NCBI GenBank assembly: GCA_963924565.1
Contig: OZ004609.1
Coordinates: forward strand, 20,770,001 to 20,834,000
Reading direction: 5' to 3'
Length of the DNA stretch: 64,000 bases
DNA from: Ascidiella aspersa
Taxonomy: Eukaryota
Positions within the stretch are counted from its first letter, which is position 1. Each line of letters opens with the position of its first letter. Made by a program: the position numbers and the translations under genes. The notes under the pieces were generated by a model, which saw only the letters and a program-made list of their open reading frames with translations, had not been told where the DNA came from and made no database searches. Positions 13,201 through 61,800 of this stretch are shown here, piece by piece.

Positions 13201-13396
13201 GTCACCGAATGTCACAAAGCTGCTTAATCAAAGACCGCTGCGAGAAAAATAAAACCCATTCCGCAATTCATTGGAAATCTTTAGTGTCGCATCGCATGGT
13301 TAGCTGTTAAAAGCGCACGTTATAAAAAGCTATTATTGTGCTTGGTTTGACAGAGACTGTTTATAAGCAGGTGGAATGTAAAGTGGAAACTAGGAA

Positions 13397-27451: not shown

Positions 27452-30400
27452 ATGCTTTCCATTAACGCCGCCAACCTGCTGCGCATGTGCGCGCTCGTCA
27501 CCGTGGTCCTGCTGGTGCTGTTCGCGGGAGAATCGCTCGCCAAATCCGGCAAGCGAAGGCGACACCGCCGGCGAAAGGCGCGCCGAGGCGGCAAGGACGG
27601 CAGCGCCGGCGGTGCCAAGGAGCAGCAACTTAACTTTCCCGATCCTCGCTTCGTCGCCGAGCTGAAAAAAGTGCAGATGGCCAAGAAACCGGGAAGGGCC
27701 TCTGCTCGTCCTGCCGTCCCCGCAGCAGCCAAGAATCCCGATTGGACGGAGGCCACGCTCAGGATCCGAGTGCCCGCGGATGACAAAAAGGAGGGCCACC
27801 GAAACAAAAAGGAGGGCCACGGAAAGTTCGGCTACCATTCTCGTATCGGTGACCTTGCCGCGCGTGTCGTGCACGTGGTCGACCCTGGACGCTCATCCCA
27901 CTTCGGATGCGGGCACGAGATTGCCAACGCTCACCAGATTCCCAAGGACGAGCCCTGGATCGCTTTGATCAGCCGCGGCAAGTGCTACTTCTTCAACAAG
28001 ATTAAGCTGGGTGAGCGGTACAACGCCAGCGCCGTGGTGATCTACGATGACAGCGACGGCAAGGTGCAGGTCATGAATGTCGCAGGTGCGTGCCTCACCT
28101 TTGTGTTTTCTATAGTTAGCTTATCCTATGTTCGCTTATAGCCACATGTCGACAGTTCCAGTGTGTGAAGTCTCTCAAGTTTGCAACGCACAAGTATAAT
28201 TATAATTCTCGTAATAGTACGTAATCTTGCCAGAAATGCCAATGTAATCATTACCACTTGGCACGTAGCTATTACGATCGGTGATATTTTTTCATATCTT
28301 GTTGAGAAAACCAATGTGCGATTTTTTCCAAACTACGACTAAAATCAAACCAGCGCGTCATTACGTTACAATATGTAAAAGCACCTTCGTCGAAAATCGT
28401 TTTAAGTAAACGACAACCGCGTTTGAAGTAGTTGTAAAACGGCCCGCGCTGCGCCCACAACAAAGTTAAAAGCTCGACAATAAATTCGTTCAAGAAATAT
28501 GTTGTCTCCGAAGATTTAAACTATATAACATCGTAGCACCTTTGACATGCCGCGGTATTTCGCCTTCATTTTGTTAAGCTGCCAGATTAGTCATGTCGCA
28601 TGTATTTACGGCGAAATGTTACACAGACGAGCACCTGTCAGCGCCAGCAGTGTACAACCCTATACGATACGTGATTCACTGCCTTATGTTCTGGCTTTAT
28701 GGTATCGCGAGTGCTTCGTAAAAGGTTGGCGTCATTCTGTTTATCGACTATCGACGGATAAACATAAATCGGACGTATTTTCGGCTTAATATTTTTTGCT
28801 CGCTGTAAATGGGAATTTAGCTATGGCTTTTTCTAAACACGCGCATAAGGCCCGCCAAGCATAGTTCCATCGGTCATGCAACGTTACGCTTGCTGCCATT
28901 TCACAAACGCGATGGTCCGAACAAAAGTAGGCGCTCACGTTAAATGGAAGCCTTTGTTTTAAGCGCATGAGTTAGGGTACAGCCTCAATCATCTTTGACG
29001 TCGTCGTTCTTGCTCCTCAGAGTTCAAGTATAGTGCGTTGGACGAGCATTAAAATAGAGGACAATATTAATTCGCTTTTCACTTTCTATATTTGGATCTC
29101 GGGTTTCATTGTGACATTGTGTCGGACGGCGTCCGGCTTGTTGATCTAGGGCGTCGCGAGTAAGCTGTAAAAACGCAGAAGGCTTTTAATGTCAAAACAT
29201 CGCCCGATCTTGCTCTTGCCCTGCTACCGACGCCGCCGCTTGTTTGTTCGAATAGGATCGCTTTCGAATGACCTAGCACAAAGCGCTAAGAGAGTCGCCT
29301 CGCACTGGGCTGTCACCCCTCGCTATGTACACAAGCGCGAGTCGACATACTTGGGGCCTAGGGATACCCTGACCGGGGATAGGCTGTCCGTGAAAAATAT
29401 GGACACAGTTCGGCTCGACTGGACCCCTGACTGCCGCAGTGGGCAGCATTGTCACAGCTGGTCCGACGAAAGAGTCCCCGCCTAAAACCTAAAGTTCGGG
29501 GGATTTGGAAGGGTTCGCTGCAGTAGCTTTTCCCTCATTATCCTTATCGCCAACCAAGAGCGTCTGTAAATAAAACCAAGCCGAGTGATGGACGGGCCGA
29601 ACAAGCGCTAGGCCTTTTAAAACAATTAGGGCATTTGTTAAAGATTGTCTTTCATCAACCAGGCCCGGTCAGTCAATCTCTCAACGCTCGTTACATAATT
29701 TTTCGCGGGACTGTAAAAGTATCCCCTTCGCCTAGCCCTAGTGAGTCATCAGCTTTCCCGGGTCATTAGTTAATTTTCATCGCATGTTTCTTTTAAGTAT
29801 GCGAATATAATAAGGCCCAAAATTTAAACAGTGTCAGAAGCTGTACATGTGCGCCAATAAACAAATACTTTCGGCAATGGATTTTCTCCTATGCTGAACT
29901 TCCCCTATATTGAAGAAAACAAAAATAACCTACTCTAAAAGATCGCGCTTCCCGTCCGAAGTAACCCCAGCCGTGAGAGCGCTCTAGCGTTTTTAGGCAC
30001 TCGCGACTTCAAAAGGGCTTATGCACCCTGCGTTGTTGACAAGCGTTCGAATTGGCCATCGACGTGTTACCCCTGGACGCGTGTCAAATTCAAAGCACCC
30101 CCCAAAATTGGCCCTCGACCCCGGTCCCCCGGCCCCATTGTGCCTGCATCGGGACAGACGATGATTATCGCGCGCGCTTTCGCACCTGTATCGAATGTGC
30201 GGGCGAGTTGGGCAAAAGCGACGCTCCATTTGGCGTTGGGCATATTGTTTTGTTTGCCGCCTTTCGCGACAATAGCCTGTTTTGACCAACTTTGGTCGGA
30301 TACGGCGCGGAGGCCGACAGCGGGGCAGGCTCTCACGTTTTGTGTTTTCCAACTGTCGCTTTCCGCGTTGTTGTTGTTCAGCTCGCGATGGCAACGCCAC

Positions 30401-36786: not shown

Positions 36787-39700
36787 ATGCAATTAGAGCG
36801 CGGTTATATAATTTTCAAACTGAGGGCGATGGTAGCAGTATGTTTTGTGCACTGCTGTTTGGCCGTGGGAGAATATCCACAAAGTCACGTAATTACTATA
36901 AGAAATACAATACAGAGAGGTTAGTTGTGCCCCTCGGTATTAAATTGCTTAAAAAAAGCAAATTACTTTCGTAAATAATATCGTAAATTATTTTCTAAAC
37001 ATATGGTCGTGAGTGAATGTGTATTCAAGGCCTTTTTGAATTTTCTAGATTTTTTTATACTCTTATACATATTTTAATTACTTCGCCTTTCACATTTTAT
37101 TTATTTCGAACATGTGCATTTTTTTCACTTCATAACCTCGTTCTTTTTAACTAAGAAATACCTAAACAAATGAATAAAATATAGTTTTAGATGATCGTTA
37201 TTTCGGCGTAGGGCTAAACTAAACATCCCTTTGTTTTAATGCTGTATATGACTATAATGAGCTAATTTAACTAACTCCTATTGCGTCGGTCTTGGAATAT
37301 TTTAGTTTCGGGATCGAACGGCTCGTCATTGAGCGCCAATATCCACAAAGCATATGTCGCCCTCCAGCGGTTCCACGTGACCTCAACCCCTGGACTGGAG
37401 CGCGATTGTTTTGCCGATCGATGCACTTTCGCTTACGTACAAAGCCTGCTGAGCGACGACACTGAAGCAGTAAGTTTGTTTATGACCAAAGAATAACCTT
37501 ATCGTTACCCTGATAATGTAGTATAAAGCACGAAAGGACATTTTTCACATTCGTGATACCACTTACATATACAGTTGCGACAAACGTAAGGGTACACCAA
37601 AAAATTAAAATATGATGTTCATTTTGTTTCCAACTGCTTGCGTTCTCGTGTATTGGCGAAAATCCAACACGGAAGGGTTCCGGCGTGTTTCCATGCCGAA
37701 GCCCCGATAGATGAGCCTGGAATTCGCCGAAGCGGCTCAACGCCATGTCGTTTTGCGACGCATGGTTGATGCGTGCACGGGAGCCGAAATATTCCGACTG
37801 TAATTTCACCCGGATTCGTTTGCGCTCGAGCCAAGCGACGCCGGTGGCAGCGGATTCCGCGCCGGGACTTCACAGCGCCGCCACGCGATCGTTTGACCCC
37901 GTTCGCGATCGGCTCCTCGTCGATTAGGGCAAAACAAACCGGCGAGTGAACAACGGCGCTATTTCGCGTCATTTTGTCGAATGATTTGGCCGCCGCCGAC
38001 CAAGGGTACTTCAGGCTTGCGCGTGGGGTCAAAACATACCGGCGTTGAACTTGCCAATCCACCCCTGTTGGTCGTCGTGTCAATCAAGTGCGTGATGATT
38101 TTCGCTTTATCGTTTTCGAGTAAAATATTCATGATTTGAGATGAATATCATGATTTCAAGATTTTGTTCAGGGTCCTGTTTTCTATCGAGATTAGTTTAC
38201 CTTCAACATTTTTCTTGTTTTTTAGTTATATGTTTAGTACAATCCCACAAAAGTCCTAAATGCAGAAAATGTATGAAGCCCGAACTCGAAAATATGTCAT
38301 GGTTTACGTATTTTTAACTTGTGTTTCGTTAATGGAAAACAAATTTGGAAAAGAAAAAGCTTTTTCCAACTTACCTAATCAAAAACGGAAATCTTTTGTA
38401 AGCAATTCAGTAACTATGAATGATTTATTTAAATGTTCTGCGTTGGTGTACATCAATCCGCCAGTGTTCACCAGGCACTTGCCCTTGTTTTTTTACCGGT
38501 GGAATACCGAACTCCAGGGATTGGGTTACTTTTGCTGAATTGACTTTGTGGTCTACAATGACGCAAGTGGCGCCTGCCAAGTTACGTAATTGTTGTTGCA
38601 CCAAAATGTCGAGGCAGCAAGACAACGAAACGCTGTCAAGGTGCAAGAAAACAAAACGCTATTATAACCGGACCAAAAGTGTAAAAACAATACGATCTGC
38701 GGCTGCGGTGAAATGCGAAAGCATAAACCTAAGCCGTGGGTGAAATATCGCGAAGGGCGCATAACTATGCGCGCTGATGCCGTGTTTTGTAAGTCGACGC
38801 CGACTCCGTGCAAAGGTTGACGCTTGTTTTTCGCGCGCGAAGACCCCGGCCGAAGCGAACCGTGCCGCCCCACCGGGTAACTCTCCACCCACCGTGAAGG
38901 TTAATTAGCGGCTCGGCATCCCGCAACCGACCGGCGCCGCATTGTTTTTGGCGCTGTGCGACCCCGCACCGGTTTCGGCTGCCAAATTCCCCCTTTCGCC
39001 CCAATTTCGGGGCGCCCGTAATCCTCGCCGGCTGTTCGCGGTTTCGTGTTGTTCGTCTTAAAAAGCAGCTTTTCGGCGAGCGGCAATGACCCCGAGGTCG
39101 AGAAGCAGTCACAGGCGAATGAAAGCGTCCCTGGAGAAAGTGTCCAACTAACGGTCGCCGTTCAAGTCGTGACAAGCCATTTATGAACTCTTTTCTGTGC
39201 TGCGCTAGTCACTTTATAAACAAGGCCAGTCTGTACGAGACGACCGTTTCCGCTAAGCGCATATCACCTTTGTTTGGATAGCAATAAATGTTGTTGTTCA
39301 GTATTACTTCGGGTCACTGTGCCGAATATCACCTTGTGCGATAAAACGGCAACATGGTAACACTATGACGAATTTTCTCAGACTTTCTTGTCTCTAGTAA
39401 ATTGAATGAACACACCGCTAGTTGTGCAGCACGGTGTGATTTGTTTGCAGAAGCGCCCCCAAGAAAAGTTCATGCTGCTGCCAATGTTTCAGGCTTAGCT
39501 ACGAACCGGCAAAATTTGTTCGGCGAAATTAACGGGTCCATTTCCCCATCGTAGGCACCTGCTTGTCGGCTGCGCTGTTTGGCAAAGGCAAAAAAAACAA
39601 CCGCGAGAGCATTGCGTTGCAAAATCGGGCCGAACAACTGGTAATGGTGTCCCGGAAGTTGGGCTTTACACGTCGCAGAACGTTGTATGGTGATAAATAG

Positions 39701-42700
39701 TAAAAGAAACCGCATTGATCCTATAGGATTTACGCAATTCGAATAAAAATGAAGCGTATTGTTGAAAATTGTCATTTTTTACAGAAGTTTTTATTTTGCC
39801 TGAACTACAACTCTTATACACAAACTTAGCTTATTTTTGTTTTGTTGACACGGTGTCTTTTTCTTACAGAGTTTGTACTGGAATGTGCTCAACTGCATCA
39901 AACATGACGTGAACTGTGAAGGTGAGCGATGCGGACCTTATAACAATTTAGTCATTTAAAACGTTACATCAAATCCAATACAGAAGTATAGGCAGTATAT
40001 TTAGAACATTTCTATTAGTTCTTTGTTCGTTTTCGTATGGCTTTGATTCTAAATCTAAATACTATATGGCTTGGAAATTAATTTCTAAATCTAACTGCAA
40101 TCTCCAGCCATTATGCTCCAATGGTCATTTAAAGAACTTTTTAAATATTTGAGGTAACTTGTGTATTGTCTGTGTAAAGAGATTAAATGAGCTTTGCATT
40201 TGGATCTTTTTTATGTAAATATTAATTTCATTATTTTTTTCTTCAACAAAACGGTTTGGTTTTGCATTTTTGTTAATGATAAATTAGAACAATTTTATTT
40301 TTTAAGTCTGTTTATTCCACCTATTTTAAAGGCTGTATTGAGACATACGTTCAACATAAATACTCAACACAGTATTATCTTGTGGGTCAAACAAGTCGTT
40401 ACAACCGCCTAAGTTTATTTTCTTTTCGGCAACGTTGAAAAAAAAATGATAAAGTTTTAAGGATAGCGCAAACTGTAGCACAGCGGTTAGCGCGTACGCT
40501 AGCTCGCTTGCTAAACAAAACGAATCCATTGCACCACACACCATGCTCCAAACGAGACTGATGCCCTCGTGCTCTCACACGGTTTGCTACTACACAAACA
40601 AAGGAATGTCCTTTAGGGCAACACAGAACGGTAAAACAATCAGTGATTAGGAGTCGAAACTCAAAAGGCGTAACAAAAGAAACGAAAGACGAAAAGCGCA
40701 GTGAAGCAAAGCAACGCAACGCAAAGTAAAGTAAAGCAAATTAAACAAATAATAATTTACACAACATTACTACAACCTCCAACCATTATGCTCCAAAAAT
40801 AAAGTTTCATTTAACACTCCAACTTAAAGTGTCACGTTATAACCATGCGATAGCAACGAGTAGAGAAGATTCCTTAACGTCAGTTATTGCTTGTTGCGTC
40901 AGACGAGAGCACTTGGGAAGCATGGGAGTCCTGGGGCAACTGTTCAGCCACTTGCGGCGCGGGAGAGCAAGTCCGGTGGCGCGAGTGCGAGCAGGCGAGA
41001 TATTGGGCGCCCAGGTGTCCCGGGGTCTACCAGGAAACACGCAAGTGCGAGATGGACGGACTGCGGTGTATTGGTAAGTCGCTGAAATATTGCTGGTAAT
41101 AATTGTTTTATCAAATTATAATCCACTTTACGCACTTTTAGTCGTTCAAAAAAACTTTCGCGTTAATCGGGTAAATCATTTCTCAAACAAAAAGGCTAAG
41201 TGTAAATACAGTTTTAATTTTTCTGAAGGACTTGATACCATCGGGCCCGCGGCATCATCGTTTTGAATGTTCGTAGGAACTAGGAAGGTCGGGCTGTTAA
41301 TGCTCGAAAAAAACACTTAAAAACACCACAACAAATGCTTGAAAATACTACTTGTTGTACGCGAGCAACAATTTTTTAAAAGTTTGCAAAAAGCACTCAA
41401 AACTAATATTGTTGCTGCTGCAGTAAGTTATACTATCCCCTTTATTTAAATAAATATAAAGATTTCAGTAAATGCTTTTTGTTTAACAAAGTGGTACGCC
41501 GCTAAGTTCAAAGACGCTATCGGTGGTATTCTGCCAATAAGTTTTGTGAACACCTGCACCAAAATTATCGTAAGTGGAATTCGTAAACTCACGTTTGTAC
41601 CGAACATGCTGGTGCAACATCTTAACCGATGTTTAAACCTCGCGGAAGGTGGATCACACTCTTTTGACGGTTGCTGCTAGAATAACTGATGCACACCAGC
41701 TAGTATAAGCATTCACGTTCCTGCGGTCGGCATTTGCCGGCACAAATGAGCCGCCGTTCGTCAACAAAAGGCCGACGTTTTAATCTCGACCACCCGAGCT
41801 TCGCGACCGCACGCGTCACGTACAAGCGTCGCTTTGCCCGAACTGCAGCGCGCATAAAAAGCACCCGAGAAAGGAGGAATTCGTTCGGAATGACAAGTTT
41901 ATTCATTTTTATCCCAAAAATAACGTATGACTTTTGGTCTCCGTTCTTTGTTGTATGAAATTCAACCGTTTACATTTATTTTTCATGTAACTGAAAACTG
42001 AAAAACAATCCATTTGGCGTTTCATTTCATAACAGTAAAAATAAAGCGTTTAATCACCATTACTGCTGTACAAAATTTAACTGTTTCTATTTATTTTACA
42101 TCTAAGTGAAAACTCCAATCCATATGGAGTCTCATTTCATAATAGTAAAAACAAGGTAGCCGATAAGTTTGAACCGGTAGCAAATGTCAGGGCAGAGCGT
42201 CGCATAGTTTGCGCACCCCTGCTTTACTGGGTGTAGCAGTTCTTTGATTGATCTCACTTTAAGCTTCCTCGACACGAAGGCTTGCCGACTTCTGAGCGTT
42301 TTAGCCGGTGACGCGCACCCTTGTCGTAAGTGAGCAATCCGCGGAACTTTGCGGTAATCCTAAAATAGCAGTGGAATGACTGTGGGCATTCCTGCTGATC
42401 CGTGGCAAAGCCTTCTCCTGAAACAACCACCTACTATTTGAAACTATATCTGTTTTGTGGTTTTCTTGTTTTTTTATTTCGAAAAAAGTTTTTCTTTTAT
42501 TTGTCAAATCAACTAAGGTTAAATTACTAACATGGATTTATAAAAAAATAATCCATTTGCCGATAGAAGTTTTTCTAACATCGTGTAAACGTGTCGAATA
42601 AATTCAGCCACTTCTTATGTAAGGCATTTTTTCTGATGTATATAGCCCCTATTCAGCTTTCACCTTTGCCTTAGAACAACCCGAGGCCAAGCCGGACGAG

Positions 42701-45700
42701 TGGGGCCCGTGGAACCCATGGAGCCAGTGTGACGTCACTTGCGGCAGAACGGGCGTGGTGACGAGGACCCGGGTTTGCCTCCCCTACGACGCCCCGTGGT
42801 ACTGCGTGGGGGAAAAGTCCCAGAGTCGCGGCTGTACACAGATTCCACCATGCCCCGGTAAATTAAAAGTTTAGAAACAACTCCACCCTTTAAATTTTTT
42901 TTCATTGAAATCCACACACTTACTTTTGTGGTACATTTTGCCGGTTCAAATGTCACACGATGATTGCCGTTGCCAAAACGTTAAAAGTCTATAAATTAAA
43001 AAAAATATATAACGCCATATTAACGCACGTCGTACATGTTTTTTTTGAAAGTTCACTATCAAACTTAATTGTTGGCGTATTTGTTTGAAATAAAAGCTGA
43101 GTTTTAGGTGGCACTGTTGCCATATTTTATTTATATTTTTTTGACAAGCTTTTGTGCAATGTGTTTTATTTGTCACCTTAAATTGATATAAAACGATGGC
43201 AAGAAATCTTGTCAGTGCCACCTAAATCTCAGTTTTCGATTCAGACAAATTCGCTAATCAAACGAGTTTAATAGGGCTAACTTTAATATAGTGAAACAAG
43301 TTAATATAGCAAAAATGTCTCGTATAGTGAACGGCGCCTGGCAGTTCTGGACGATTTGGAGCCCGTGCCTTGTGAAGACTTGCGGAAGTGGGGTGAGAAA
43401 GCGCACAAGGGCCTGCTCGCACCCTGTTGGCCTTGGCAAGAAGTGCGTCGGCGCTTCGTCCGAATACGTAGCCTGTCGCAGCATTACACCGTGCAAAGGT
43501 CAATTGATGCCTCGAATGCTTACATCTGGATCAGACAGAGCCTCTTAAAGGCTTTTTTCCTTAGTTATACGACAATTTGGTTCCTCATTCTCATTTTCGC
43601 CCTTTAATTAACGAACAATAATTATTAGAAGTAAAGGTATACAGCGTCTGACAATTCAAAGTGTAAAATATTTTAAATGTTACTACCTTGATAATTAATT
43701 TTCGTTTTTTTCGGCTCGTCCAATGCTTACACGACCCAGGTGACCATTGACAGCCAACAGAGTCCTTACCTTCAACATGGTTTTTTAACTTCATTTTATT
43801 TCGATATGCATAATCAATTTTTGCCAAAAATGTAAAGCCTTCTTTTCCTAGGAGTCAATAAAATCCACCCGAAAGTTATATCTGTATTCAAAATGCTAGT
43901 TACAATCGCAGTGTTGCAGGCTAACAAACTTTGAAACTACTGAATCCATAACCGATAACCAGTACATAGTTTATACCTTTCTACCTCAAACAAACCACTA
44001 ATACGGTCTTTTATTTATGTTCTTACCGCAGAAGACCACTTCACCACCATCAACCACTTCTCCGAGCACAGCTCACTGCTTTTCAGGGAGCAACCTCCCT
44101 CCTCCTTCCTCCATGTCTTCCTTCGCTCCCGGCCACTCTTGGCCGCCGGAACCGTTTTCCGCTACGTGGGGAACCCCCGGGGCTTCGCGGCGCAAAGCAA
44201 GTCACCCACCAACGTTCGTGTGGCAAAGGGTCCGACCAGACCAAAAATGGCGGCGGGCGCGACGAGCAAAACGAAAACTGCCGAAAAGCACAAATCCGAG
44301 TTTATCCGCATCTCATTGGCCGAAAGTGGTCACGTGATGGTCCACGCTTCCATTAACGGCTCGGACGAAGTCGTCATGGAAGTCGGCCAAACCCTGGTGA
44401 GATATTCAATTCAAGTTACCCGCAACCATGTCCCTGTGATTTACTTGCGGATGTTGTTCTCTTGAAATGTATTTAATGAAAATTCCACATGCTTTAAACG
44501 TCATTATTTGTTGGTATACATATTGCTTCACCTATTATTAAATGATACCACTCTCTAAACAAAAATCCTGGTTCCGCCCTTATGCAAAGTCAGTTGAGTT
44601 TAGGTATTTTTAAATTGTCAAAATGAAATGTTTTGAGGAATCTATAGTTATAACGCGGCTGTTTAAGAACGCGTGAGGTTTGACTTCAGAAAATTGACAT
44701 GCTTTCGATCCCGCTTTAGTTAACATAAACGGCCCCAAACACTGCGAGTGCTTAGAACCAGGACCATTTTTTGCACTTTATGCGGCTTCATTGTGTCAAC
44801 CTGCGATTTAGGTGACACGACCGATAAGATAGTAAAAATAGAGTTTTATCAGTGTAAAAATAGGTTTAAATTAAAAAAAACAACTTTGGCAGGTTGGCCA
44901 CTGGAACAACATCCGCGTCACGGTGGTGAGTGACGTGCTGCTTGTGCGACTCAACGACGGGCAGAACATGGGTTCGGCCCTCCACGCCACCGCAGGGGAC
45001 GCCCCGGGCACCAAACCGACCGGTGCCGCTCCGGCCAAATCGTCCTGGTGGACCGGCTTGTGGGGTTACGTAGACGAAATGAGCAAATTGAGCGGTGACT
45101 CAATCGGGAACCTGATCAAGGGCAACCGGGCCGTTCTGGCTTCGTTTAAGGGCTTTGTGGGCCTGGGCAAGGTCGCGAAGGGAGACGTGAGCTTTAGGGG
45201 TGAGGCGTTTCTGTTGTATTGTAACAGTGTTGGGTATACAGTTTACAACAGCAATGGGAACGAGTCACAAGAGTGTAAGCGAGTTATCCAAACTCCATTC
45301 GACAAATAGTTTTTTTGTTTTATTAATTAAAAAAACATTTCTAATTTTACTCTGTATAAATGCTATTAAGTTTTAAGTAAAATTCCTTTTAGATAAAAAT
45401 ATTAAAAAAAAAACTCGCGATTCCTGGCGAAATTTTTCGCAACGTAATACGACTCAACATAAAATCCCAGTTCTTGCGCCGAACCTGAGAATTCCGTTTA
45501 CCTCTTTAGATTTAAGACTTTATACGGCCGGCAACAATACACCACGTGAAACAGTTTAATCGCTTTGGCAAATACGACAGAATGCTGCACTACCGTCCAT
45601 TTTTAAATTGCATTCAACACTGCCGCAATGTTTACACTCCGAAAAGGTTACGTGTCGGAGCTGCAAGTCAACTTCAAACGCTTCGGTTTGGACAAGAAGA

Positions 45701-48700
45701 AACCCAACGAGTTGAAGACACTGTGGGACCCGATACAAAGTCGTGGGGTTGCGCGCGTCCCCACCAAGGACATGCACGGACACGAGGAAGTGAAGTTGCG
45801 ATATTTCGACTCTCATCAGCGGTAAGTTACGTTTTCTTGTTGATATTGCGTTAACTATTACTGAGAGAAATTTAACGGCAGATAGCTTTACACAACAGTT
45901 CAATTTCGGTTTTGTGGTTTCAATTTGGAATCGCTGGTATCACAGACCAGTAATCGTTTGCATCCAAGACATGCGTCTCTCGTTACAGGACGCTTTGTTA
46001 CCAAGTCGGAATTTAAAAACTCAATAACCTGAAACCTATATTTTACACTAGAAAAAGTTATCAACCAAAAAAATTACGCAAATTCGATATAACCTTTACT
46101 TTAGTACATCGAAAGCCATCACAGAATAACTGAATCAGGCTCAGGGAAGCGAGTCGCGAAACAACCATACGTCAATGCTTGCTAGATCACAGTTGTTGAA
46201 GACACATGTGTGTTTATCTGTCATATCCTTTAGTTCATATGTTTTCCTGTGAGTTTAAGACACGTTCCCAATGATAATTACTTTGTCAGCAATCGATGGC
46301 CAACAATAAATTCTTCCCCTATGCAGAGTCCATCTACCGTTCACAATGAAGTGGTGGAATTTTGAGCGGGTTTCTCGTCTGAGAGATTACCATAACACAA
46401 GTGACATCAAACCCTATGACGTAGCAACCTTAGAGATTACGTTTAAACCGACTCGAGCTGACGGGATTTTAGTATGGAATAGAGGTGTTACTATTGATGT
46501 TAATTGATTAAATTCTGTGTAAATTAGAAATAATTTTTTTGAAGATTTAAGTTATTAACTTTAATGAAACTTAATGACAATGGTTCGAAGATGATATGTT
46601 TGTCTTTTCTCGGTGATGGGATGTGATACTAAAAAAACAAAATGAAACGGACAATACAATTCCAATACATGTATTGTACCTTGAGGTTTGAAATTTTCGA
46701 ACTGCCAATAAATTCCAATAACTTTACCAGCTAAGCACGACCTTTCCAGCCACATGAAGCTTACCGTGGAGGACGGGACAAGGATAAAGTTCACCTTGGC
46801 CCAAGGAGGTCAGATTAAAACTCTGGACAGCGACGATAATGTCAAGCTCCGGCACTGGAACAAATTGACTCTGCAAATGTTAAGGTACTTTTAAAGTTTT
46901 CCAAAAAAGCAGTTAATGTTGTGTTATTCACCAGTGTTGTAATGACGTAAGTCAGCGACTTGACAAATGACTTTACTTGACTTAAGTCTTTTGGGCAGAA
47001 TGACTTGGGTTAAAATGAAGTGTTTTCCTTTAGAAAAAAACATAAGGAAAAATATAGTTTTTTGTATTTTTTAGTTTAGTTATTGTTTCGTACGATTTTA
47101 ATTCCAATTGTTAAATGTTTCTTTTTATGACAAGGGCGTGACTTGAAATTGAATTACTCAAATTATGACTTGACCTGGACTTAACTTGGGCAACTGATGA
47201 CTTGGACTGTGACTTGACTTGTTATTTATTTTAAAAGACTTGACTTTGACTCAAGTTGTTTTACAAATGACTTGACTGGGACTTAAGTCGTTTTAAAATG
47301 GCTTATTTACAACACTACGATTCACACTTATATCTCTTATGCGACACGAGGTTTTGAATTAACCTGGATGACAGTGATGAGGCGAGATACCTGATATATG
47401 TGCAATTGATTTACAGGGAAGGAATGGTTCGGATGAAGGTAAACGACGGCGAAGTGGTGCAACTGTACATTCCTCCTGTTACCAGGGAAACCTTGCCCGG
47501 CGACATCCTCCTAGTAGGGGGCGCAGAAAAGGTATAGCTCGGCACTCGCGGTCATTATGGCTTAATTCGAGACAAGGTGTTGTGCACCTTTTGTGTTGAG
47601 CTGTAGTTTCAGGGCGAACGACGAGATGACACTATCACAAGTCTTTGGTTTTGTTTTACCATGCCTAACCTTTTTTATGATTCCTATCTAGTAAATTATT
47701 CGGGGAGTGCTAAATTGACTTTAACTTGAAACTATGCCCATCTGTCTACTATAAATATCATAACCTAAAATTAAAGCAAACTACGTTCCGACTAAAAGTT
47801 TGTATTTGTTTACGCTGCTGTGTCAATGAATAGACACCAAATATTTCTCTCTGTTTATCATAAATCCACGAATCTATGCAAATAACGTCATCTTTCGTTT
47901 GTGCTAACCGTGGCTGGCAAAACTCTAACTCACTTGACGCAGAACATTTTTGAGTCGCCGGACATGAAAGCGCCAAAAGGCCCAACAGCGCGCCACAACG
48001 ACGGCTTCCACGGCTACATCTTCAGCTTAAAGCAGAGCTCTGCTGAACAAATGCACGACCACAACTTGCACCTCAACTTGCACGGGATGCCGCCGTCGGA
48101 TTTGTTCAACGATCCAGGTGTGATTTGATTTACGTTTTTGCATCGGTTAAACCTAGGTATTCATATCTTTTTTTACACTTTACTAAATAATGACAAAATT
48201 CACTAGTTATCTTATATTTGCTTCTGAAAAGCTAAGCAGCAGTTCATTGCCTACATCAATTCACTTCAACCACAGAGCTAACTTCAACAGCTTTGTCAAT
48301 TAGTTATACTTTAAAACGGGGCTGCGGAGTCCGTTAAAAATAACCCGAGTCCGACTCCTGCCAAAGAAATAAACCCAAGTCCGACTCCCGAGTCCGACCC
48401 TGACTGTACAGCCTGTATTTCGCCAATTTACTAAGTAAACACTGTGGATATTCAGCAATCCACCTATTTTGGGTGTAGAGTGGTAATTCGTTCACTCACA
48501 ATACATAGTTGGAAAATATTCCACCATATGCTATTCAAACTTTACCATTTACAGTTGGCGGCCACATCAGTTTTGAAATTTGCTAGTGCGCATGCGCATG
48601 TCGGACTCAGGACTCGGGTAGTTTTATGTGGTCTTACTCGAGTCCCGATTCCGAATACAACAAAAAAACGACTCCTCGAATTTGGCGGGGTCATGACTAG

Positions 48701-51700
48701 ATCCGTCCCTGGAAATAGTGTTTCTGATACAACCGAACATGTAGAAACTCGTCCTTGTTTTCGCTTAGCCTATGTATTTTAAGGAAAATAAGCCGCGGGC
48801 CGGATTAAATTGCTTGGCTGACCGTATGTTGCCCAGGTCCGCGTAAGAAACAAATAAGTTTTTTTGCTGTTGTTGGTTGTAGTTTACTGGAAACACTGGT
48901 ATTTTAAACCGGTCAAAGAAAGTGGGGATGTCGAACCGGAAGCGGAAAGCGGGGCCACAATCCAGGTAAAGAGGGAACTCGTTTGCCCCCTCCCTGTACC
49001 CCCTGACGTCACCAGCATGCCCAACGTCACCTGGTACAAAGACGCCGTTCCTGTAAGTCTCCCAAATAATTCGAGGCCAACTTTAATTAACATTGCGGAC
49101 AAAAACGTCTCAAAAAATGTTCGTTTGAGTCCATGATAATTTATACTTAATAAGTAAAGATTTCAGCATTTTCATAGATTTTCACTTCAGTTTGTTTGTG
49201 ACAACTGTGTTGTAGTTATCCGATATATTCAGCCTATTCAGTGTTTAGTTTTTTATAGCTTGAAACTAACAGCCTTGGTTATCTGGCTAAGTATCCCCAT
49301 TTTGTGAAGTAGTCGAGTTAATATATATTATCGGAAATTTTGCGTTTTTGAAAATATGTATTGTAATTAGTTTTTCTAAAGTTTATAAAAATGAATTAAT
49401 AAATTTGCCTCTATAATGCACGTTATTACTCGTCATCACGAATAGCAGACATTTGGTGGCTAATGAAAGTGCGATCTAAATTTATTACCCCAAAATAACT
49501 TAACAGAAGATTACCATTCGCCTAATTAATTGTTATTTGTTAATAGATTAAAAAGAGTTCTCTCTTTGGCTTAAAAACGGAAGTTAGTGCTGCTCTAGTA
49601 CAATTCCGTCTCAGTTTACTGCCGACCAGCGACGGGTCTAAGAAGCAATCCGGAGTATATTCGTGTCTCGTCGAAGACGAATACACGCATTGGCTACTGG
49701 CAAATCACGTGGTAGAAGTCATCAACCAGGGTAAGTGTATCAGTCCGGGTAGCTCTAAAACCAGTTTCAAAATTCGTAATTATAATGAAACTAAAACAGT
49801 TCTCTATTCTTGTTTCCTAGATGGCCTGCTTCAAAATGATCTCGACTTTTGATATTTATAATGTCCTAAAACTAAATGGGATGATAGCTTCAACGATTAC
49901 CCACTCAACCGGCATTATAGCAAACGTTTGGCATTTGTGTACAGTTTTATCCGGGGCAAGAGTTATGTTATTTTTTAGGGAGGCAACACAGCTTAAGGCA
50001 TGCAAATTATTGCACCGTCTTATAACTTAAATTACCTATACCTTTATAGATTTTTCGCATTGCCAATCTAATAGAAGTTGTTTATTCGAAGTTCTAAACT
50101 GCCGACAGCCACTATGCCTTAAGCATCAATGAACTGCGTTTAGATTTATTCCTAGTATATTTACGTATATTCACCTATTGTATTTAATGGTAGCAGAAAC
50201 AATGTAGCCTGTTTTTTTAAACGTGGAAGACACGTGTTGTAGTACAGGGGTTACCCAACCGCCGCTCGTCACAAAGTTTTACGCGGCTTTTATTAAGTTT
50301 GACAGCGTAATGGCATTTCTTGAGACGTCCTGCAGCGTGAATAAAATTCTTTTAAATCTACCCCAATATGGTTAGTATACAACATCTAATAAATCTAGCT
50401 GAGCAAAGGTATTTGTGTAAGTGTGAAAGAAACGGCAAAATTCATTTCCGCCCATATGTAAGGCACAGCTCTTTTGTTAACCAAGTAAAAAAAATATATT
50501 TTGTTAAATTCTTTAAGTGTGGTGGGTTTTTGCGTATCTCCAAACCAAGCTTTTTGAACGTCGTGAACTGCCTTGGAAGTTTTTTCAACTACACTCAAAT
50601 GCGGCAATTGCACCTTTTTCAGATATGTTTGAAGTTGGCATGATGGCAGGCGTTGTGAACTACATCAGCACCAAGGCTGGAGTATCAAAGATGACTGCCA
50701 TATATATCGCCCTCGGTTCGGTAGCGGGTGTTTGCCTCTTTGTCATGTCTATTTGCAGCGCAATAAACTGGTAAGTTTGTGGCCTACGTTGCCTATTCAT
50801 GCGAACCGTCTTTAAATTATATCCGGTGTCGCGTTGTTTTTGTTTTGTTCGTAAATATTGCTGGATGGCCGATGCTTGACACTTTAATCCGACACCGACC
50901 CCGGATCTTTTGAACAAAAAGTATCGAGCTCCGATCCAATACCATTGAAGTTTTTGCTATGCTCAAAAATTTTTTCCAGTTAATTACGTTAATATTTGCT
51001 TGTTGCTGCATTAGATAGCAATCCAACTTCAAAATACCTATATTAATTTGATATCGGATCCAATCCCACTGCAATATCGGAAGAGTACCGATACTACCAC
51101 TTGGCATTGGGTATCGACTCTCAGATATTATCGGACATTCCTACTGGTGGCAAAATACAATAAACCTTATTATTTGTCAATTATTTTGATATATTTAATA
51201 AAAAGAAAATGTGTGAAAACTGGTCACACCGTGTTGATTTTGGAAAAAAGTCTTTATTTAAATATTTTCTGGCTATTGTCATGTAACATGGTAATTGTGG
51301 GCTTTAAAATGGAGATGACAAATGCAACTTATTTCATTATAGTTCGATTTACCTAGGGTGTCTAATTACGATTTTTCGGAAACGTTTTTTTTTCAATTTA
51401 AAATAACTAATGCTATAAATTATTCTAGGGTTTAGTACATTATTATAAAATGTAAAATTTGTGGATTTCAGGTACAATTACAAAATGGCGAAATCGAAGA
51501 AAAACAAAAGAAAAAAACATAAGAACAAAGAATATCAAAAGTTATTAAAGAATACACAAGACGAAAACACTACAGGCCATCATAGTTTACGGTAGATTTA
51601 AAATATAAATTGCTTAAAAAATATATTTATGGCATCTCAACTGTGTTCTAATTTTTTTATATATAAGTCTGACATTTGGATATTTGCTTGAGGTACATTT

Positions 51701-54555
51701 GTTCAAGCTTATTTTAAATTGTAATCAACGAAATATTTTCATATGTTGGCCCTGTTTGTTCAAAACTATTACGATGGTGATTTATTAACGACTTGTGAAA
51801 TGTATAAGATCAACATGTATTCGTTATGTTTTGTTTTATCCTTGACATGAAAAAGCTCATTAAATAGACTCAAATGGTAAGCAGATTTTCACCGCTACAT
51901 TTGAGATAGTGGCATTATGTAAGTTGAAGTCCTAAAAAAAACGTTTAAAAAATATACATAACGGAAGTTTTAAAAAATATTAAAGGATTTATCTCTATCA
52001 ATTTCAACAGGTGATTGATTTAACAAGGTGTCGGTTTAAACTAAAAATAAAATATATAGAAATATCAGAGGATCGTTTTCTTTACTTTTCAAGTAACAAA
52101 AAAATTCCGTCGAGGGATAGAGACGAAGAAAAGGACAAGTATTCGTCCAGTAAGAAACACAAGCACGGAGAACGTAAATCGTACGAAGCAAGACTTAATG
52201 GAGACAAGCACAGGCACAGGCAGCACCGCGTCCACGGACACCGCAGTAGGTTGGTATGGGTAGGCAATTCATTTTACAATTGTGATTTATTTTCATCGAG
52301 CGTAGGGTAAACACAGATTACCAGCAACCTTGGGACATTTTTTGCTTCGTTGTCTAACAAATGCCAGAAACAGCTAGAAAATTAAAACAATGCCAAACGC
52401 ACCTATAGCAGTTTTGCGTCAACATTCTTTGGGAAACCGGATAAATAAAAAAAGTGTATGTTACGAACTCTTTATAGTAGTCGTAAAAAACACTTTGTGT
52501 TCTTTCGCATTCTTACAGTCCCAGTAAATAATAAAAAATCTCTGCTCTTTTGGTAAATCGACCGCTCCTTGACATCATTTGTTTAAATTTAAGCCATCGT
52601 GTCCAATCATTATGTTCCATACCGTCAAAGGCTACGTGCTTTCACTTTTAGTTAAACAGAACAGTGCACAAGTAGTAGAAAATAAAATTGATTGTGTACT
52701 GGTTGCCAGCAAGGCCTTCTCAATGTTTCCTTCGTGACCCCCTCGTAAACTCCCCATATCCCCCAAGGTAAGCTCTATACAAAGTTTTAACACCCTTTCT
52801 TATGCTATCCCAAATAATATATTGCGAATTCCGTTCTAGGTGGCTTCCAAAAACATTGTTGGTTCAGTTTAAAATTGGACAAAATGTGAATTTATTAGAG
52901 CGAAACACCCTATACTCAGTTGGTAGAGCTACGATCCCCGTATGGCCGGAGGTCGTGAGTTCGAACCTTACTGCAGGCTCGACTGATTCGGTTAGTCTGT
53001 GATGGTTTCCGGTGCACTATGATACGTAAGCCGTTATCTTTTTTCAAAAGCGACTTTGGAAGGGCTAGATCACAGTTGTTGTACACGCGTGTGTGTCAGT
53101 TTTGATTTTGTACTGCGTCTCTTTCCAAACATGCGTAAATACAATGCCTTATTTGCACTTGTGGCGATAGCCACAAACGGGCAGCTGAAGAAGCACCGTT
53201 GCTCGAGACAAACGTCACAGCAGAGGAGGCAATGCCGTCAAACGAACTTTCCCCGCGGCGGATGTCGAGTGTGGTTCCTGGCCAGAGAAGAAGATCGAAC
53301 CCGTTTAGCAGAAGTGTTTCTCATAAAAAGAGCGGCACTGGCAGCGGGTCCGGAACATCGCGAAGTAGAGACATGAAGTTGGCTCCTAGGGAGAGGTAAG
53401 TTTGTTGGTTGAATTGGTGTGGCTTGACTTCAATACGTCTCTTAGAGTTCATTTTACAAAAAATTGACAATGTTTTACAAAAAAAAATGATGCTTAATGA
53501 AACAATTTGTTTTTGAATTTTAACTAATAGTGTCGTAGTAGTGTCAATAGACATAGAGTAGCAGAATTGAAAAAGAGCAGTGTTGACTCGATATAGTCTT
53601 TTGGGCAAATGACTTAACTTGACTAAGTCTTTTAGACAAATGACTTGGGTTGGAATAAGTGTTTTCATTAGGCAATTTTTCGTAAAATTGGGTTATTTAT
53701 CCTAATTTTTGAACATAAAACAATTTGATGGCCCTCTTGTGCCTTTTTGGTATTTTTTAGTTAAGGTATTGCTCATATTCGGACGAGTTTACCCAATTTT
53801 AATAGCTTAACGTTTAATTTCTATGACAAGGACTTGACTTGAAATTGACTTGCTTTAATCATGACTTCACTTGGACAGTTATATTACAAATGACTTAACT
53901 GAGACTTAATTCATTTCGAAATGACTTGTTTACAACACTTAACAGAAGTATAAATACCACCTTTGAATGTTCTGAACAAATTTATTAATTTTAACATCTT
54001 GTTAAACACATTCTTCCTACTTGTGACGTTGGTTTTTCCTTCTACAGATCTTGATTTATTCCACTGTTTTAAACAACTACATTATGGAGTTAGCTGCACA
54101 AGCGTGGCATAGCTCATTAAAACCATTCTATCGAAGAGAAAGCTGAGTGCAGCTAAATGCATTATACACACAGACACATGCCTGTAATCTATTAGGCGTT
54201 AGCAGCCGCAAGTCCAACAAGACCGGGTGTTTTCAACCCCTTTCTCGGTCCGTCAATATATCAGTTAATTAGATCAATATATCAGTAAAAATTAGAAACA
54301 AAAAAACTTTCTTTAAGCCTTCGTTTGGCCTTTGCAGACCTGACCATTTGAGGTTATTTTTAGCAAATATAGGTGCAACGCAGTTTTGTTGTACAAAAGG
54401 AATGCTTGTTCAGGTCTTCGCAACCTGGCCCGAGTAGCGGCTTCATGGCGCGCTTATTGGGACTCCACCACTCATCCGACGAATCCTTTCTCTCATGTGG
54501 TTCATCAGACGAACCAGACGAAGTGGACTTGTACGAAGATCGATTGTTCGCATGA
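36787..54555 (+). CDS. Type I membrane protein: signal peptide, degenerate Gla-like domain, 3x TSP1, 2x laminin G, Ig, TM, basic cytoplasmic tail; 20 exons, about 1155 aa
   Basis: Phase-consistent GT-AG exons: 36787-36919, 37306-37469, 39870-39921, 40903-41073, 42675-42857, 43328-43498, 44032-44396, 44893-45199, 45647-45821, 46327-46484, 46731-46884, 47417-47531, 47943-48117, 48883-49052, 49547-49730, 50623-50770, 51472-51591, 52094-52249, 53171-53395, 54414-54555 (3468 nt). Three TSP1 WxxWxxWxxC...TCG...RxRxC repeats on phase 1-1 exons. LamG motifs LHVFLRSRPLLAAG / GHWNNIRV / FRGYVSELQVN and LEITFKPTRADGILVW / RHWNKLTL / LLVGG / GFHGYIFSL. Ig motifs LVC...VTWYKD...SGVYSCLV. TM IYIALGSVAGVCLFVMSICSAI. 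Confidence 0.85.
41960..42160. repeat. Degenerate about 110-bp tandem duplication (intronic)
   Basis: AATCCATTTGGCGTTTCATTTCATAACAGTAAAAATAA at about 42007 versus AATCCATATGGAGTCTCATTTCATAATAGTAAAAACAA at about 42117. Confidence 0.6.
46932..47317. mobile_element. hAT-like MITE rich in GACTT repeats (copy 1)
   Basis: Ends CAGTGTTGTAA / TTACAACACTA; flanks TTATTCAC / CGATTCAC (6/8); many GACTTG units; homologous to 53578-53940. Confidence 0.75.
48317..48711. mobile_element. hAT-like MITE with GAGTC/GACTC repeats (older copy)
   Basis: Starts CGGGGCTGCGGAGTC; internal sequence collinear with 56519-56891 (shared GTTGGAAAATATTCCACCATATGCTATT). Confidence 0.75.
50860..51143. mobile_element. Degenerate MITE with CCGATA/TATCGG repeats
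   Basis: Ends GGATGGCCGAT / ATCGGACATTCCTA; repeated CCGATA-like units. Confidence 0.5.
52905..53040 (+). mobile_element. tRNA-derived SINE fragment
   Basis: A box-like TACTCAGTTGGTAGAGC and B box GAGTTCGAACC (52957-52967) at tRNA spacing, with no acceptor or anticodon stems; followed by a non-tRNA body. Confidence 0.6.
53578..53940. mobile_element. hAT-like MITE rich in GACTT repeats (copy 2)
   Basis: CAGTGTTG ... TTTACAACACT ends; collinear with 46932-47317. Confidence 0.7.
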
Positions 54556-58800: not shown

Positions 58801-61800
58801 GAAGTTTAAACACAAGTTGAATTTGAACATGTCTTAACTTTTTAGTTATCATTTTATTACTCCAAATCATATCAGTTAAAATAGAGCGTCTGGTTGAATA
58901 TTTTTGTTCTCTAACAATTGTATGACCAATGAATTGACAGTAGGAACGAGAGGAACAATTTTATTAAGTAAATTGTTTAGATTAAAACAAATCACAGCAT
59001 TTTAATGTTTAAGTCAGGTGTTCAAGTTACAATTTTTTACCTGTTTTTCGACGAGTTGGTCTACCTCGCTGGCGCTCTGCTTTTTTAGTAGTTCTTCCTC
59101 TTGTTCAGGATCGTAAGGAGCGTCATCCTCTGTTCCTTCCTCTTCCTTGTCGGCGAAAGCGGTTTCCGGGTCATATTCCTTTGCGCAAAAAATCTTTAAG
59201 TTTACGACATTTAAACCTGAAAAGGTGAAATTAGCCAAACATTTTGTAATTGCCAAACACCCTAACACTAATTAAAAATGACCAAACCCAACCTCTTCTT
59301 GTTCTGGGTCGTAAGGCTCGTCATCTGCTGCGTCGTCATGCTCACCGATCGTGTCCTCCGGATCGTAGTCACCTCCTTCGCCCTCGTTTTCGTCTTCTGT
59401 GCGACAAACGTGAACTATTTTATTAACAAGAAAGTATTCACATGCATAGAATACATCTCGCAGTAAAGAGATTCGAAGTACCAGGGTCCTGCAGTTAACT
59501 TTTACGATCCTGGTACTGCCCTGGTTAAACTATGAAATCTACTAAGTCTTAGAAAACATATTCGGAGCACAAAACTTACCGACGACTTGGGCACCTGGTG
59601 AATACGGCTGGTCGCCATTTTCTTGCTCCTAAAAACGCATAATAACAAGTTAGGCGACAAATCGTTATTAAACCAATTACTTGTTGCTCATCGAAGGTAA
59701 TTTTCACTTTGTTACTTAAAAGTAGAGACTAAGGTAAAATGTAGCACATGAAGCCGAAACGTTTCTAAATTGTCACCACCATATCGACAGTCTAAATCAG
59801 TGGTTCTTAACCTTTTTCATATGGTTACCCCCGATAAGAAAATGACGGAGTTCAATTACCCCTTTTCAGAAAATAACAAATTGCAGCTTTCACTAATTTG
59901 TAAAACAACACAAAGATGACATTTTACACTCACATGCCTGTTAAAAAAACTAAACAAGTCAATGGGAATAAATATAAATCGCTCTTCTGGTGTAAACGAA
60001 GTATAAACCGACGTTATTCAGGTTTAAAATCCCACAAATCAATCGAACCCAACCTCCAACCGGACGAAAAACAAGCCTTAAAAGAGCTCAAAAATAACAC
60101 AGGTTTGGTAATTCAACGGGCGGACAAAGGTAATGTTACAGTTGTTATGGATAAATCTGAGTACGATAATAAACTTCACAATATGTTGGCAGACAGGGAC
60201 ACTTACTGTCCTGTTACGGTTAATCCCACTAAAGGTATAGAAAAACAACTTAACAGGTACATGCAACGGCTGAAGAAAGAAGAGAAGGTGAACAACTACG
60301 AATGGAACCTTCTCAAAAGTTCCGATGCTACATCACCATTACTCTATGGGTTACCCAAAATACACAAACCGGAAATCCCGCTCAGGCCTATTGTTTCATT
60401 CATTGGGTCCCCCACGTATAACTTAGCTAAACGTATTTCTTTAATTTTATCCCCTCTTTTAGGTCAAACAGAATATCATGTTAAAAACTCGATTGGTTTC
60501 GTTGAAGAAATTACAAATTTTCAAATAAAAGAAGATGAAAGCATGGCCTCGTTCGACGTTGTCTCCCTGTTCACCAATGTCCCCGCTAACCTGGCTATAC
60601 AAGTAGCTAAAGAACGTCTTAACCAAGACAACACACTGGAAAACAGGACTAAGTTTAATATTAATGATATACTAGAAGGGTTAACTATATGCCTAGAATC
60701 TACATACCTTAAATTCAAAGGAAAACATTACAAACAGATATTTGGAACAGCTATGGGATCACCGGTTTCAGTAACTGTGGCAAACTTGGTTATGGAGGAC
60801 ATCGAACAACGGGCCATGAATTCATTCCATACCCCCCCCCCCCGCGAATCTGGCGAAGATACGTGGATGATACGTTTGTCATAATAAAAACAAACTTGAT
60901 ACAGCAGTTCCTGCACCACTTGAACAGCTTGGAACCTACCATTAAATTCACTATGGAAACAGAGAACAAATGCTCAATTTCATTCTTGGACTCATTAATC
61001 ACTCGTAACCGGTCAGGTAAATTATCTTCCAAGGTATTTAGAAAAGTAACACATTCAGATCGCTACTTGAATTTCAGATCTGACCACTCTTTACAACACA
61101 AACGCTCGGTTGTGAGTTCCCTGCTACACCGAGCTTCAAAACTTTGCAGTAACTATCAGGAAGGCAACGAAATTAAACATGTTAAGAAGGCCATGAGATT
61201 AAACGGATACCCCGACTGGTTGTCCAAACCTCGTAACAAAACCAACCATTTAACATCTAAACCAGAATCTAAAGGTCTGGCCATTATTCCCTACATTCCA
61301 GGTCTGGGAGAAAAATTAAAACGCATTTTGAAGGGCCACCACATCTCTACAGCTTTTAAACCAGCCAGAAAAATGGGAAATATTTTACCTTCAACTAAAG
61401 ATCCAGTCAAACCAGAAAAACGTCAAGGGGCTGTTTATGAGATTCCCTGTGGAGGTTGTTCAGCAACATACATAGGGGAAACTAAACGTTCCTTTCATAC
61501 CAGGAAACTCGAACACATGCGAGATGTCCGCCACGAAAAGGCATCCCGGTCAGCTCTGGCAGAGCATGCGGTTGAACTCCGACACGGAATTGATTGGGAT
61601 AACTGTAAAATTCTATACTGGGAACCGCACTATATTTATACGATTATGTTGCTACATTATAGGCGTAAAGCTAATCAATCTGCCATCATGCGCACCAATA
61701 TATGATGTGCATTATTGCGATTTAAATTGAACTGAACTTGCAATGTACCAGACTGCAGTCAGCCCCTCGGCCCTGTCATTCATAACCACTAATGGTTACT

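Follow-up and report, generated by a model that had tools for sequence, protein, structure and literature searches.

A 64-kb stretch of chromosome C3 in the 308.6 Mb genome of the ascidian Ascidiella aspersa (G000:C3:20770001-20834000, here called the window) contains, at window positions 36787-54555 on the plus strand, one real gene encoding a single-pass type I membrane glycoprotein of approximately 1155 amino acids. The protein is probably a receptor belonging to an old orphan family, composed of a Gla-derived cap, three TSP1 repeats, a LamG pair, an Ig domain, a transmembrane helix and a non-catalytic tail, and acting in adhesion or matrix recognition with signalling through the tail. That this is one gene is concluded from orthologue collinearity, an open 20-exon model, plus-strand RNA reaching from the first LamG domain to the transmembrane helix, the presence of a single copy and a minus-strand gene downstream. 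The gene was taken as single-copy on the observation that every non-TSP1 match of the Ciona protein in the A. aspersa genome maps to the present locus.

In Ciona intestinalis the orthologue is LOC100180507 (XP_004225772.2 / XP_078481926.1), listed as 'uncharacterized protein' with isoforms of 924-968 amino acids, and a Clavelina lepadiformis protein of 986 amino acids showed 40% identity to the Ciona protein over 96% of the length. In tblastn searches against the window both proteins were strictly collinear with it over the same interval, 37293-50771, which holds exons 2-16, and the Ciona protein additionally matched the last exon (54421-54549). The C-terminus of the Clavelina protein displayed the same acidic DEVDLY a few residues before its end. 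The two orthologues share with the window protein 30-55% identity per exon, the degenerate Gla-type (pseudo-Gla) module, the loop, three TSP1, two LamG, Ig, the transmembrane helix and the DLY C-terminus, but their tails are about 90-120 amino acids long compared to about 215 in A. aspersa. Both are automatic predictions only and carry no Gla annotation. The literature search found no paper on either protein, and the terms 'Gla-RTK' and 'LOC100180507' were in none of the searchable papers. A fourth ascidian was represented by contigs of 52 and 44 kb (L019 and L020, JGI metagenomes 3300001913 and 3300001463), in which the gene is present from the pseudo-Gla module to the first exon of LamG 2; these contigs are host DNA within a metagenome and come from another ascidian species. 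An exhaustive phmmer search of 1.84 billion proteins with exon 7 returned only three proteins, all of this family, one of them a 947-amino-acid protein of C. intestinalis.

A second profile search revealed a more distant homologue, the hypothetical protein BaRGS_00001077 (P0132; 1237 amino acids) of the gastropod Batillaria attramentaria. Its alignment with the Ciona protein starts at the pseudo-Gla module and includes the ...CFETHCTF... core and the YW...C loop. The snail protein was matched by the ascidian N-terminal piece (E 2e-6) and by the ascidian LamG 1 profile (1.3e-8). Its architecture consists of seven TSP1, two LamG, an Ig-like stretch, a transmembrane helix and a tail with DTDFDLY. 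The module order, the pseudo-Gla exon entered in phase 1 and left in phase 0, the intron 15 residues past the second Cys and the acidic DLY tail motif are the same as in the ascidians. The snail protein differs by an additional TSP1 and a loop-like stretch upstream, by a total of seven TSP1, and by a DLY motif that adjoins the membrane instead of the C-terminus. The simplest reading of these sequences is that the ascidian and Batillaria proteins belong to the same family. Because the gastropod homologue shares both module order and intron, the architecture would be no younger than the protostome-deuterostome split and would predate it. The orphan family seen so far thus comprises at least four ascidians and one gastropod, and no vertebrate member turned up in the searches made here.

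Ancestry of the N-terminal module

The N-terminal module is supported as a degenerate, Gla-derived domain by profiles, by predicted fold and by intron position and phase. For comparison, seven true Gla exons were cut from the A. aspersa genome. When the family profile of three species was aligned with the true Gla exons by hhalign, the match had Prob 85 and P 6.7e-6. With five species the P value was 1.2e-4, and the score of 23.6 was reached by none of 200 column shuffles (7.9 +/- 1.9, maximum 15), placing it approximately 8 standard deviations above them. The alignment extended to the end of the exon in both the pseudo-Gla and the true Gla families. Searched against PDB, the whole-family profile found the Gla domains of FIX, FX, protein C and TMG2 with E values from 0.012, and a profile of the exon only (window, fourth ascidian and snail) gave 11 matches with E no higher than 10, every one a Gla domain, the best at 0.039.

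Predicted structures pointed in the same direction. Among the ten ESM Atlas structure rows closest to Ciona residues 36-98, nine were Gla proteins (TM 0.51-0.61), with a TMG4-like protein as the nearest and factor VII, Gas6, prothrombin and protein Z among the others; the top feature match was also a Gla cluster, weak at 0.75. The AlphaFold model of the Ciona protein contained three helices in this module at pLDDT 76-84. The module has kept the core elements of the Gla fold: the disulfide of LERxC-x4-C, the helix after it and the YW aromatic stretch.

The gene structure is likewise of the Gla type, with an exon entered in phase 1 and left in phase 0, followed by a mini-exon of 52 nt. A Gla exon running from phase 1 to phase 0 is the established gene structure of the vitamin K-dependent proteins. 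In the window the exon ends at a phase-0 GT donor exactly 15 residues past its second Cys. The fourth ascidian (L019) and the snail (L021) have the donor at this same place, as do L001, L003, L004, L007 and L008, which are five of the seven true Gla exons examined.

As read from its sequence, the module is nevertheless dead as a Gla domain, because the propeptide and the dibasic site are missing and the glutamates are few. Gla domains of the vitamin K-dependent proteins have 9-12 glutamates in carboxylated positions. The 38-residue core contains 1-5 Glu in the five family members (2 in the window) compared to 8-11 in the seven true Gla exons, so that nearly all glutamates open to carboxylation are gone. 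The window exon also lacks what the true exons have ahead of the core, a propeptide of the form VF...EA..FL..R.KR for recognition by the carboxylase, with a dibasic cleavage site.

The module might instead be an unrelated small helical disulfide domain with a chance likeness to Gla. Such an origin would fit with the lack of a match to the Pfam Gla model, with the phmmer result for the pseudo-Gla exon as a single sequence against PDB sequences (best E 0.68, FVII), with the borderline PDB profile E values of 0.012-0.04 and with the low language-model feature score given above. It is made improbable by the fact that every weak PDB match is a Gla domain, by the distance of the hhalign score from the column shuffles, by an alignment that runs to the exon end in both families, by identical intron position and phase in three lineages, and by Gla proteins being the neighbours of the predicted fold. 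A Gla-derived module is therefore preferred.

A search for the parent of the module, in which the pseudo-Gla profile was compared with each true Gla exon, gave no meaningful ranking and was set aside. Two clusters of short Gla-type exons with propeptides were noticed elsewhere in the genome, at C2:8683241-8796176 (at least seven copies) and C2:7143567-7200678 (at least four copies). Some of the C2 Gla copies are nearly identical (L007 and L008) and resemble small Gla genes duplicated in tandem.

Relation to Gas6, Protein S and Gla-RTK

The genome of A. aspersa contains two genes with true Gla exons that bear on the relationship of the present gene to the Gas6/TAM system. The first, the Gla receptor tyrosine kinase (Gla-RTK) at C9:11718985-11731361 on the minus strand (L017/L018), has a true Gla exon, a transmembrane exon about 6 kb further on, and then tyrosine-kinase exons. 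Among open reading frames (ORFs) of at least 50 amino acids between its Gla and kinase exons, there was no TSP1, LamG or Ig. The present gene shares only the Gla origin with Gla-RTK. The second, at C4:31523000-31547540 on the minus strand (L013-L016), comprises a true Gla exon with propeptide, a candidate FW mini-exon, approximately 15 EGF/cbEGF exons and two LamG, and is a Gas6/Protein S-like architecture in an ascidian, even though published work (PMC4221892) has GAS6/PROS1 originate at the base of vertebrates. This C4 gene may correspond to one of the Ciona Gla proteins reportedly described by Kulman in PNAS in 2006. No specific link was found between its LamG and Gla exons and the present gene.

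The LamG pair is strongly diverged, and the several comparisons made with known domains did not agree with one another. Its profile matched agrin best in PDB (E 0.19), and Gas6 was not matched. Single-sequence phmmer against PDB sequences gave no match for the LamG 1 exon and agrin at 1.4 for the Ciona LamG 2 fragment. In the Foldseek list neurexin and laminin came at the top and Gas6 was 37th, a result of little weight since the model is of low pLDDT. By ESM Atlas features a PROS fragment came first, tied with neurexin at 0.94, with SHBG at 0.93, and a word-indexed search with the region of the LamG pair returned only the Ciona cluster. Profiles of the ascidian LamG 1 and LamG 2 were also run against 3824 ORFs from 21 LamG-bearing genome stretches, the C4 gene included, and none scored above 8 bits, so a LamG phylogeny could not be built.

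A tentative and rather unlikely reading is that the family is a membrane-anchored, non-carboxylated sister of the Gas6/Protein S lineage, the succession of Gla-type cap, spacer repeats and LamG pair having been present in the common ancestor of molluscs and chordates. If this were true, the phase-1/phase-0 Gla exon would have arisen long before vitamin K-dependent clotting and the TAM-ligand system. The origin of GAS6 and PROS1 has been placed at the base of vertebrates (PMC4221892); the roots of their ligand architecture would then move back from there, in a form tethered to the cell that produces it.

Still less probable is a tunicate derivative of the Gas6/Protein S and Gla-RTK/TAM system, in which EGF was swapped for TSP1 and phosphatidylserine recognition moved to TSP1, giving an engulfment or decoy receptor. 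It would account for a Gla-derived module and a LamG pair being found together in one ectodomain as in Gas6/Protein S, for all modules being of phase 1-1, for the PROS fragment cluster and SHBG near the top of the language-model search with the LamG pair, and for the Gla, EGF and LamG gene on C4. Against this, the snail homologue has the same order and intron, so that no tunicate-specific swap took place, and the Gla-RTK of the same genome shows no TSP1, LamG or Ig among ORFs of at least 50 amino acids. Furthermore, the LamG profile found agrin and not Gas6 in PDB, no LamG exon of the genome rose above 8 bits, neurexin tied with PROS in the language-model search, and the pseudo-Gla profile scored the Gla exon of the C4 gene at only 9 bits compared to 18 bits for L001 and L002. 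A preliminary description of the window, made from its sequence alone, had regarded the gene as a relative of the Gla-RTK/TAM system formed by replacement of EGF with TSP1, and had known of no protein with this architecture. The first claim is not supported, since the C9 Gla-RTK shows only Gla, transmembrane and kinase exons among ORFs of at least 50 amino acids, and neither is the second, as an event of one lineage, given the gastropod homologue with the same order and intron. The third is not supported either, as predicted proteins of this kind, unnamed and unstudied, are already in NCBI and UniProt. The gene is thus better described as a member of an old orphan receptor family, and is much less exotic than a TAM ligand-receptor mosaic.

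Gene model, domains and transcription

The exon model was made by picking canonical splice sites that preserve the frame and the spacing of the orthologues. It consists of 20 exons, with every intron GT-AG and the frame open throughout, and yields 3468 nt and 1155 amino acids. The encoded order is signal peptide, Gla-like exon, short Cys loop, three TSP1, two LamG, Ig-like domain, transmembrane helix and a tail of about 215 amino acids. All exons given below are on the plus strand.

Exon 1 (36787-36919; 133 nt, phase 0 to 1) encodes the start codon, ATG at 36787, and the signal peptide with its hydrophobic core, and ends at the donor gag/GTTAGT. The pseudo-Gla exon 2 (37306-37469; 164 nt, phase 1 to 0) contains LERDC-x4-C-TF and has the donor gca/GTAAGT. 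Exon 3 (39870-39921; 52 nt, phase 0 to 1), which encodes the YW aromatic stretch and a C-x6-C loop, was located by a tblastn match to Ciona YWSVLNCVKFGITC, and its YW/C-x6-C stretch is kept in Clavelina, in the fourth ascidian (L019) and in the snail. A longer candidate for the Cys loop, an open frame of intron 2 at 37590-37766 on the plus strand, had no orthologue match by tblastn and was rejected. Its C-x17-C stretch opens with CLRS and in this is reminiscent of the thrombin-sensitive loop of Protein S, probably by chance.

Each TSP1 repeat occupies a single exon of phase 1-1, and the three window exons pass the Pfam TSP_1 model directly: exon 4 (40903-41073; 171 nt, 4.2e-10), exon 5 (42675-42857; 183 nt, 2.9e-9) and exon 6 (43328-43498; 171 nt, 8.2e-11). 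The motifs WxxWxxW and CSATCG could be read in the translation of exon 4. LamG 1, with a low-complexity insert and a linker, is spread over exons 7-9 (44032-44396, 44893-45199 and 45647-45821), which are collinear by tblastn with Ciona residues 277-534 and with Clavelina, and LamG 2 over exons 10-13 (46327-46484, 46731-46884, 47417-47531 and 47943-48117), which matched Ciona by tblastn with 46-55% identity in exons 10-12 and 39% in exon 13. Single LamG exons of the window gave no Pfam match, being too fragmented or diverged. In the orthologues the region aligned with LamG 2 matched Laminin_G_2 (1.6e-9 to 3.2e-8), and LamG 1 reached Laminin_G_1 values of 3.5e-4 (Ciona) and 1.7e-3, below the cut-off. 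Both LamG domains of the snail homologue scored (Pfam 3.9e-16, two stretches).

The Ig-like domain is encoded by exons 14-15 (48883-49052 and 49547-49730), which together form a phase 1-1 block with the pattern Cys/Trp/SGVYSC. In the AlphaFold model of the Ciona orthologue, which has a mean pLDDT of 50, strands at 756-832 form a beta sandwich-like run at pLDDT 60-83, and the UniProt name of the Clavelina protein is 'Ig-like domain-containing protein'. The juxtamembrane stretch and the transmembrane helix are in exon 16 (50623-50770), which has 41% identity to the transmembrane region of Ciona and coincides with the top RNA bin (6.97). The cytoplasmic tail and the stop codon follow in exons 17-20 (51472-51591, 52094-52249, 53171-53395 and 54414-54555), an open splice chain in which all introns are GT-AG. 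Exons 17-19 are predicted by splice logic alone; the last exon matched the C-terminus of Ciona by tblastn and encodes the DEVDLY motif common to Clavelina. The tail is basic, disordered and of low complexity, and ends in ...DEVDLYED...FA. No Pfam domain was found in the tail exons, and no kinase exon is present within about 1.6 Mb on chromosome C3, the nearest PF07714 matches being more than 1.6 Mb away.

The TSP1 exons, the LamG block at its start and end (exons 7-13) and the Ig block are thus all modules of phase 1-1. Much of the preliminary description holds in this part. The stop-to-stop frames of the plus strand at 36.7-54.6 kb contain all the pieces that it listed, and its parts, coordinates, strand, domain order, tail of about 215 amino acids and single gene agree with orthologue collinearity and with the open 20-exon model. 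The absence of a catalytic domain was borne out by the tail exons and the distant kinase exons. Its degenerate Gla module is upheld by profiles, predicted fold and the conserved intron position and phase, and its phase 1-1 modules were found in the TSP1 exons, the LamG block and the Ig block, as exon shuffling requires.

Transcription was assessed with an RNA run labelled as the same species (X4), of which approximately 6% was used and mapped on window positions 44850-50800. Twelve of the 13 bins holding exons 8-16 were covered at a depth of 0.7-7 by reads whose first mates all fell on the minus strand, which in the usual stranded libraries denotes plus-strand RNA. All six repeat-free intron bins were at 0, and a few others were slightly covered (0.2-1.3). 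A fusion, within the model, of a secreted Gla-like/TSP1/LamG matrix protein with a separate Ig-transmembrane protein could draw on the lack of listed junction reads and on Ciona isoforms with different C-termini (P0003 and P0123 compared to P0126), but is highly improbable, given that the three independent annotations of Ciona, Clavelina and Batillaria each show one ORF in the same order, that the phases fit (LamG ends and Ig starts in phase 1), that RNA coverage in one run is continuous on the same strand, and that the Ig exon is preceded by neither a start codon nor a signal peptide.

Three intron stretches, at 46044-46242, 46840-47436 and 48233-48829, are high-copy repeats with a summed contig depth of 30,000-125,000 compared to about 50 for unique sequence, and run X4 contained RNA from both of their strands. 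At window position 48896, T was found in seven of seven RNA reads, whereas the genome and the DNA run have C. The difference is synonymous, lying at the third position of a His codon of exon 14, and is most likely a polymorphism between individuals. Another run, X3 (organism B, 21% of sampled words), was discarded as RNA; it contained short near-identical pieces in introns and exons alike and resembles low-coverage DNA.

Downstream of the gene, minus-strand ORFs were found at 57.6-59.5 kb, and a retroelement with two overlapping long ORFs at 59904-61702 on the plus strand. The first of these ORFs matched RVT_1 (2e-4). The second showed by eye a motif resembling a GIY-YIG endonuclease, which would fit a Penelope-like element, and had no Pfam match. 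The upstream neighbours on the same strand are an exon encoding both a signal peptide and a PA domain (1.4e-6) at 27416-28138, a TPR-like ORF of 245 amino acids at 13394-14128 and a HEAT-like exon at 9946-10269.

Proposed function and comparison with known receptors

LamG pairs, and TSP1 repeats that carry WxxW and CSxTCG motifs, typically bind sulfated glycans, matrix proteins and partners on the cell surface, and for this reason the protein is most likely an adhesion or matrix-recognition receptor. Its TSP1 and LamG domains would be the ligand-binding parts for cell-surface adhesion or for recognition of matrix or glycans. The Gla-type cap would have no part in classical calcium chelation or in insertion into phosphatidylserine membranes, and is probably a structural or protein-binding tip. 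The only feature of the tail conserved from snail to ascidian is the acidic motif D-x-[VF]-D-L-Y, which in the ascidians lies a few residues before the hydrophobic C-terminus. Our best guess is that the motif may serve as an adaptor docking or sorting site, possibly once the tyrosine is phosphorylated, and the hydrophobic C-terminus may be a PDZ ligand. The DEVD within the tail motif of two species is also a caspase-type motif, which we regard as a curiosity.

Several observations weigh against an old family of receptors as described here. Pfam Gla (PF00594) had no match by hmmscan at E up to 1 in the window exon and the Ciona protein, and the pseudo-Gla exon was not among the 20 PF00594 matches of the genome at E up to 10. 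The Ig domain is below the Pfam cut-offs, with Ig_2 at 0.054 for the window exon and 0.0089 for Clavelina, and the AlphaFold model of the Ciona orthologue falls below a pLDDT of 50 through the larger part of the LamG region. The ascidian LamG 2, Ig and tail profiles do not detect the Batillaria protein. The searches were made with single window exons or orthologue proteins. The joint table of the RNA run contained only repeat-derived entries and no splice-junction reads, the joining of the exons being based on orthologue collinearity and coverage, and the proposals on function, ligand and tail motif are inferences.

What is new is the combination of known modules in one protein and a degenerate Gla variant conserved across phyla. 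The proteins themselves are already in public databases, unnamed and with the Gla-type module unannotated. The family defined here is an unstudied receptor family common to tunicates and a mollusc, of interest for the history of the vitamin K-dependent proteins and as an orphan receptor, and it corrects the account of the gene as a Gas6/TAM mosaic. Its N-terminal module clearly illustrates how a Gla domain can lose carboxylation and yet keep fold and gene structure. To the field of vitamin K-dependent proteins it offers a dated marker, with Gla-type exon and intron positions present in a protostome, and to ascidian biology a surface receptor that is single-copy, lacks a kinase, has a conserved motif in its tail and can be knocked out in Ciona.

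Among known systems, UNC5, BAI/ADGRB and semaphorin-5 are receptors that use TSP1 for recognition of matrix or ligand, and they were among the best matches of the TSP1 repeats. Neurexin and CASPR are LamG receptors and were among the best fold matches of the LamG pair. To our knowledge, no member of these families joins TSP1, a LamG pair and Ig behind a Gla-type cap. The cytoplasmic domains of such TSP1 and LamG receptors, which are the ZU5 and death domains, the seven-transmembrane (7TM) part and the 4.1/PDZ motifs, are absent from the present gene. PRRG/TMG1-4 and the ascidian Gla-RTK are similar in that a Gla-type module forms the tip of a single-pass membrane protein, but in them a functional Gla domain stands directly before the membrane, followed in Gla-RTK by a kinase, and TSP1, LamG and Ig are lacking. 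Gas6 and Protein S are unlike the present protein in being secreted and carboxylated and in having four EGF repeats; the present gene has no propeptide, few Glu, TSP1 in place of EGF, and an added Ig domain, transmembrane helix and tail. Common to both are the N-terminal Gla-type module, the disulfide loop, the C-terminal LamG pair and a Gla exon that runs from phase 1 to phase 0.

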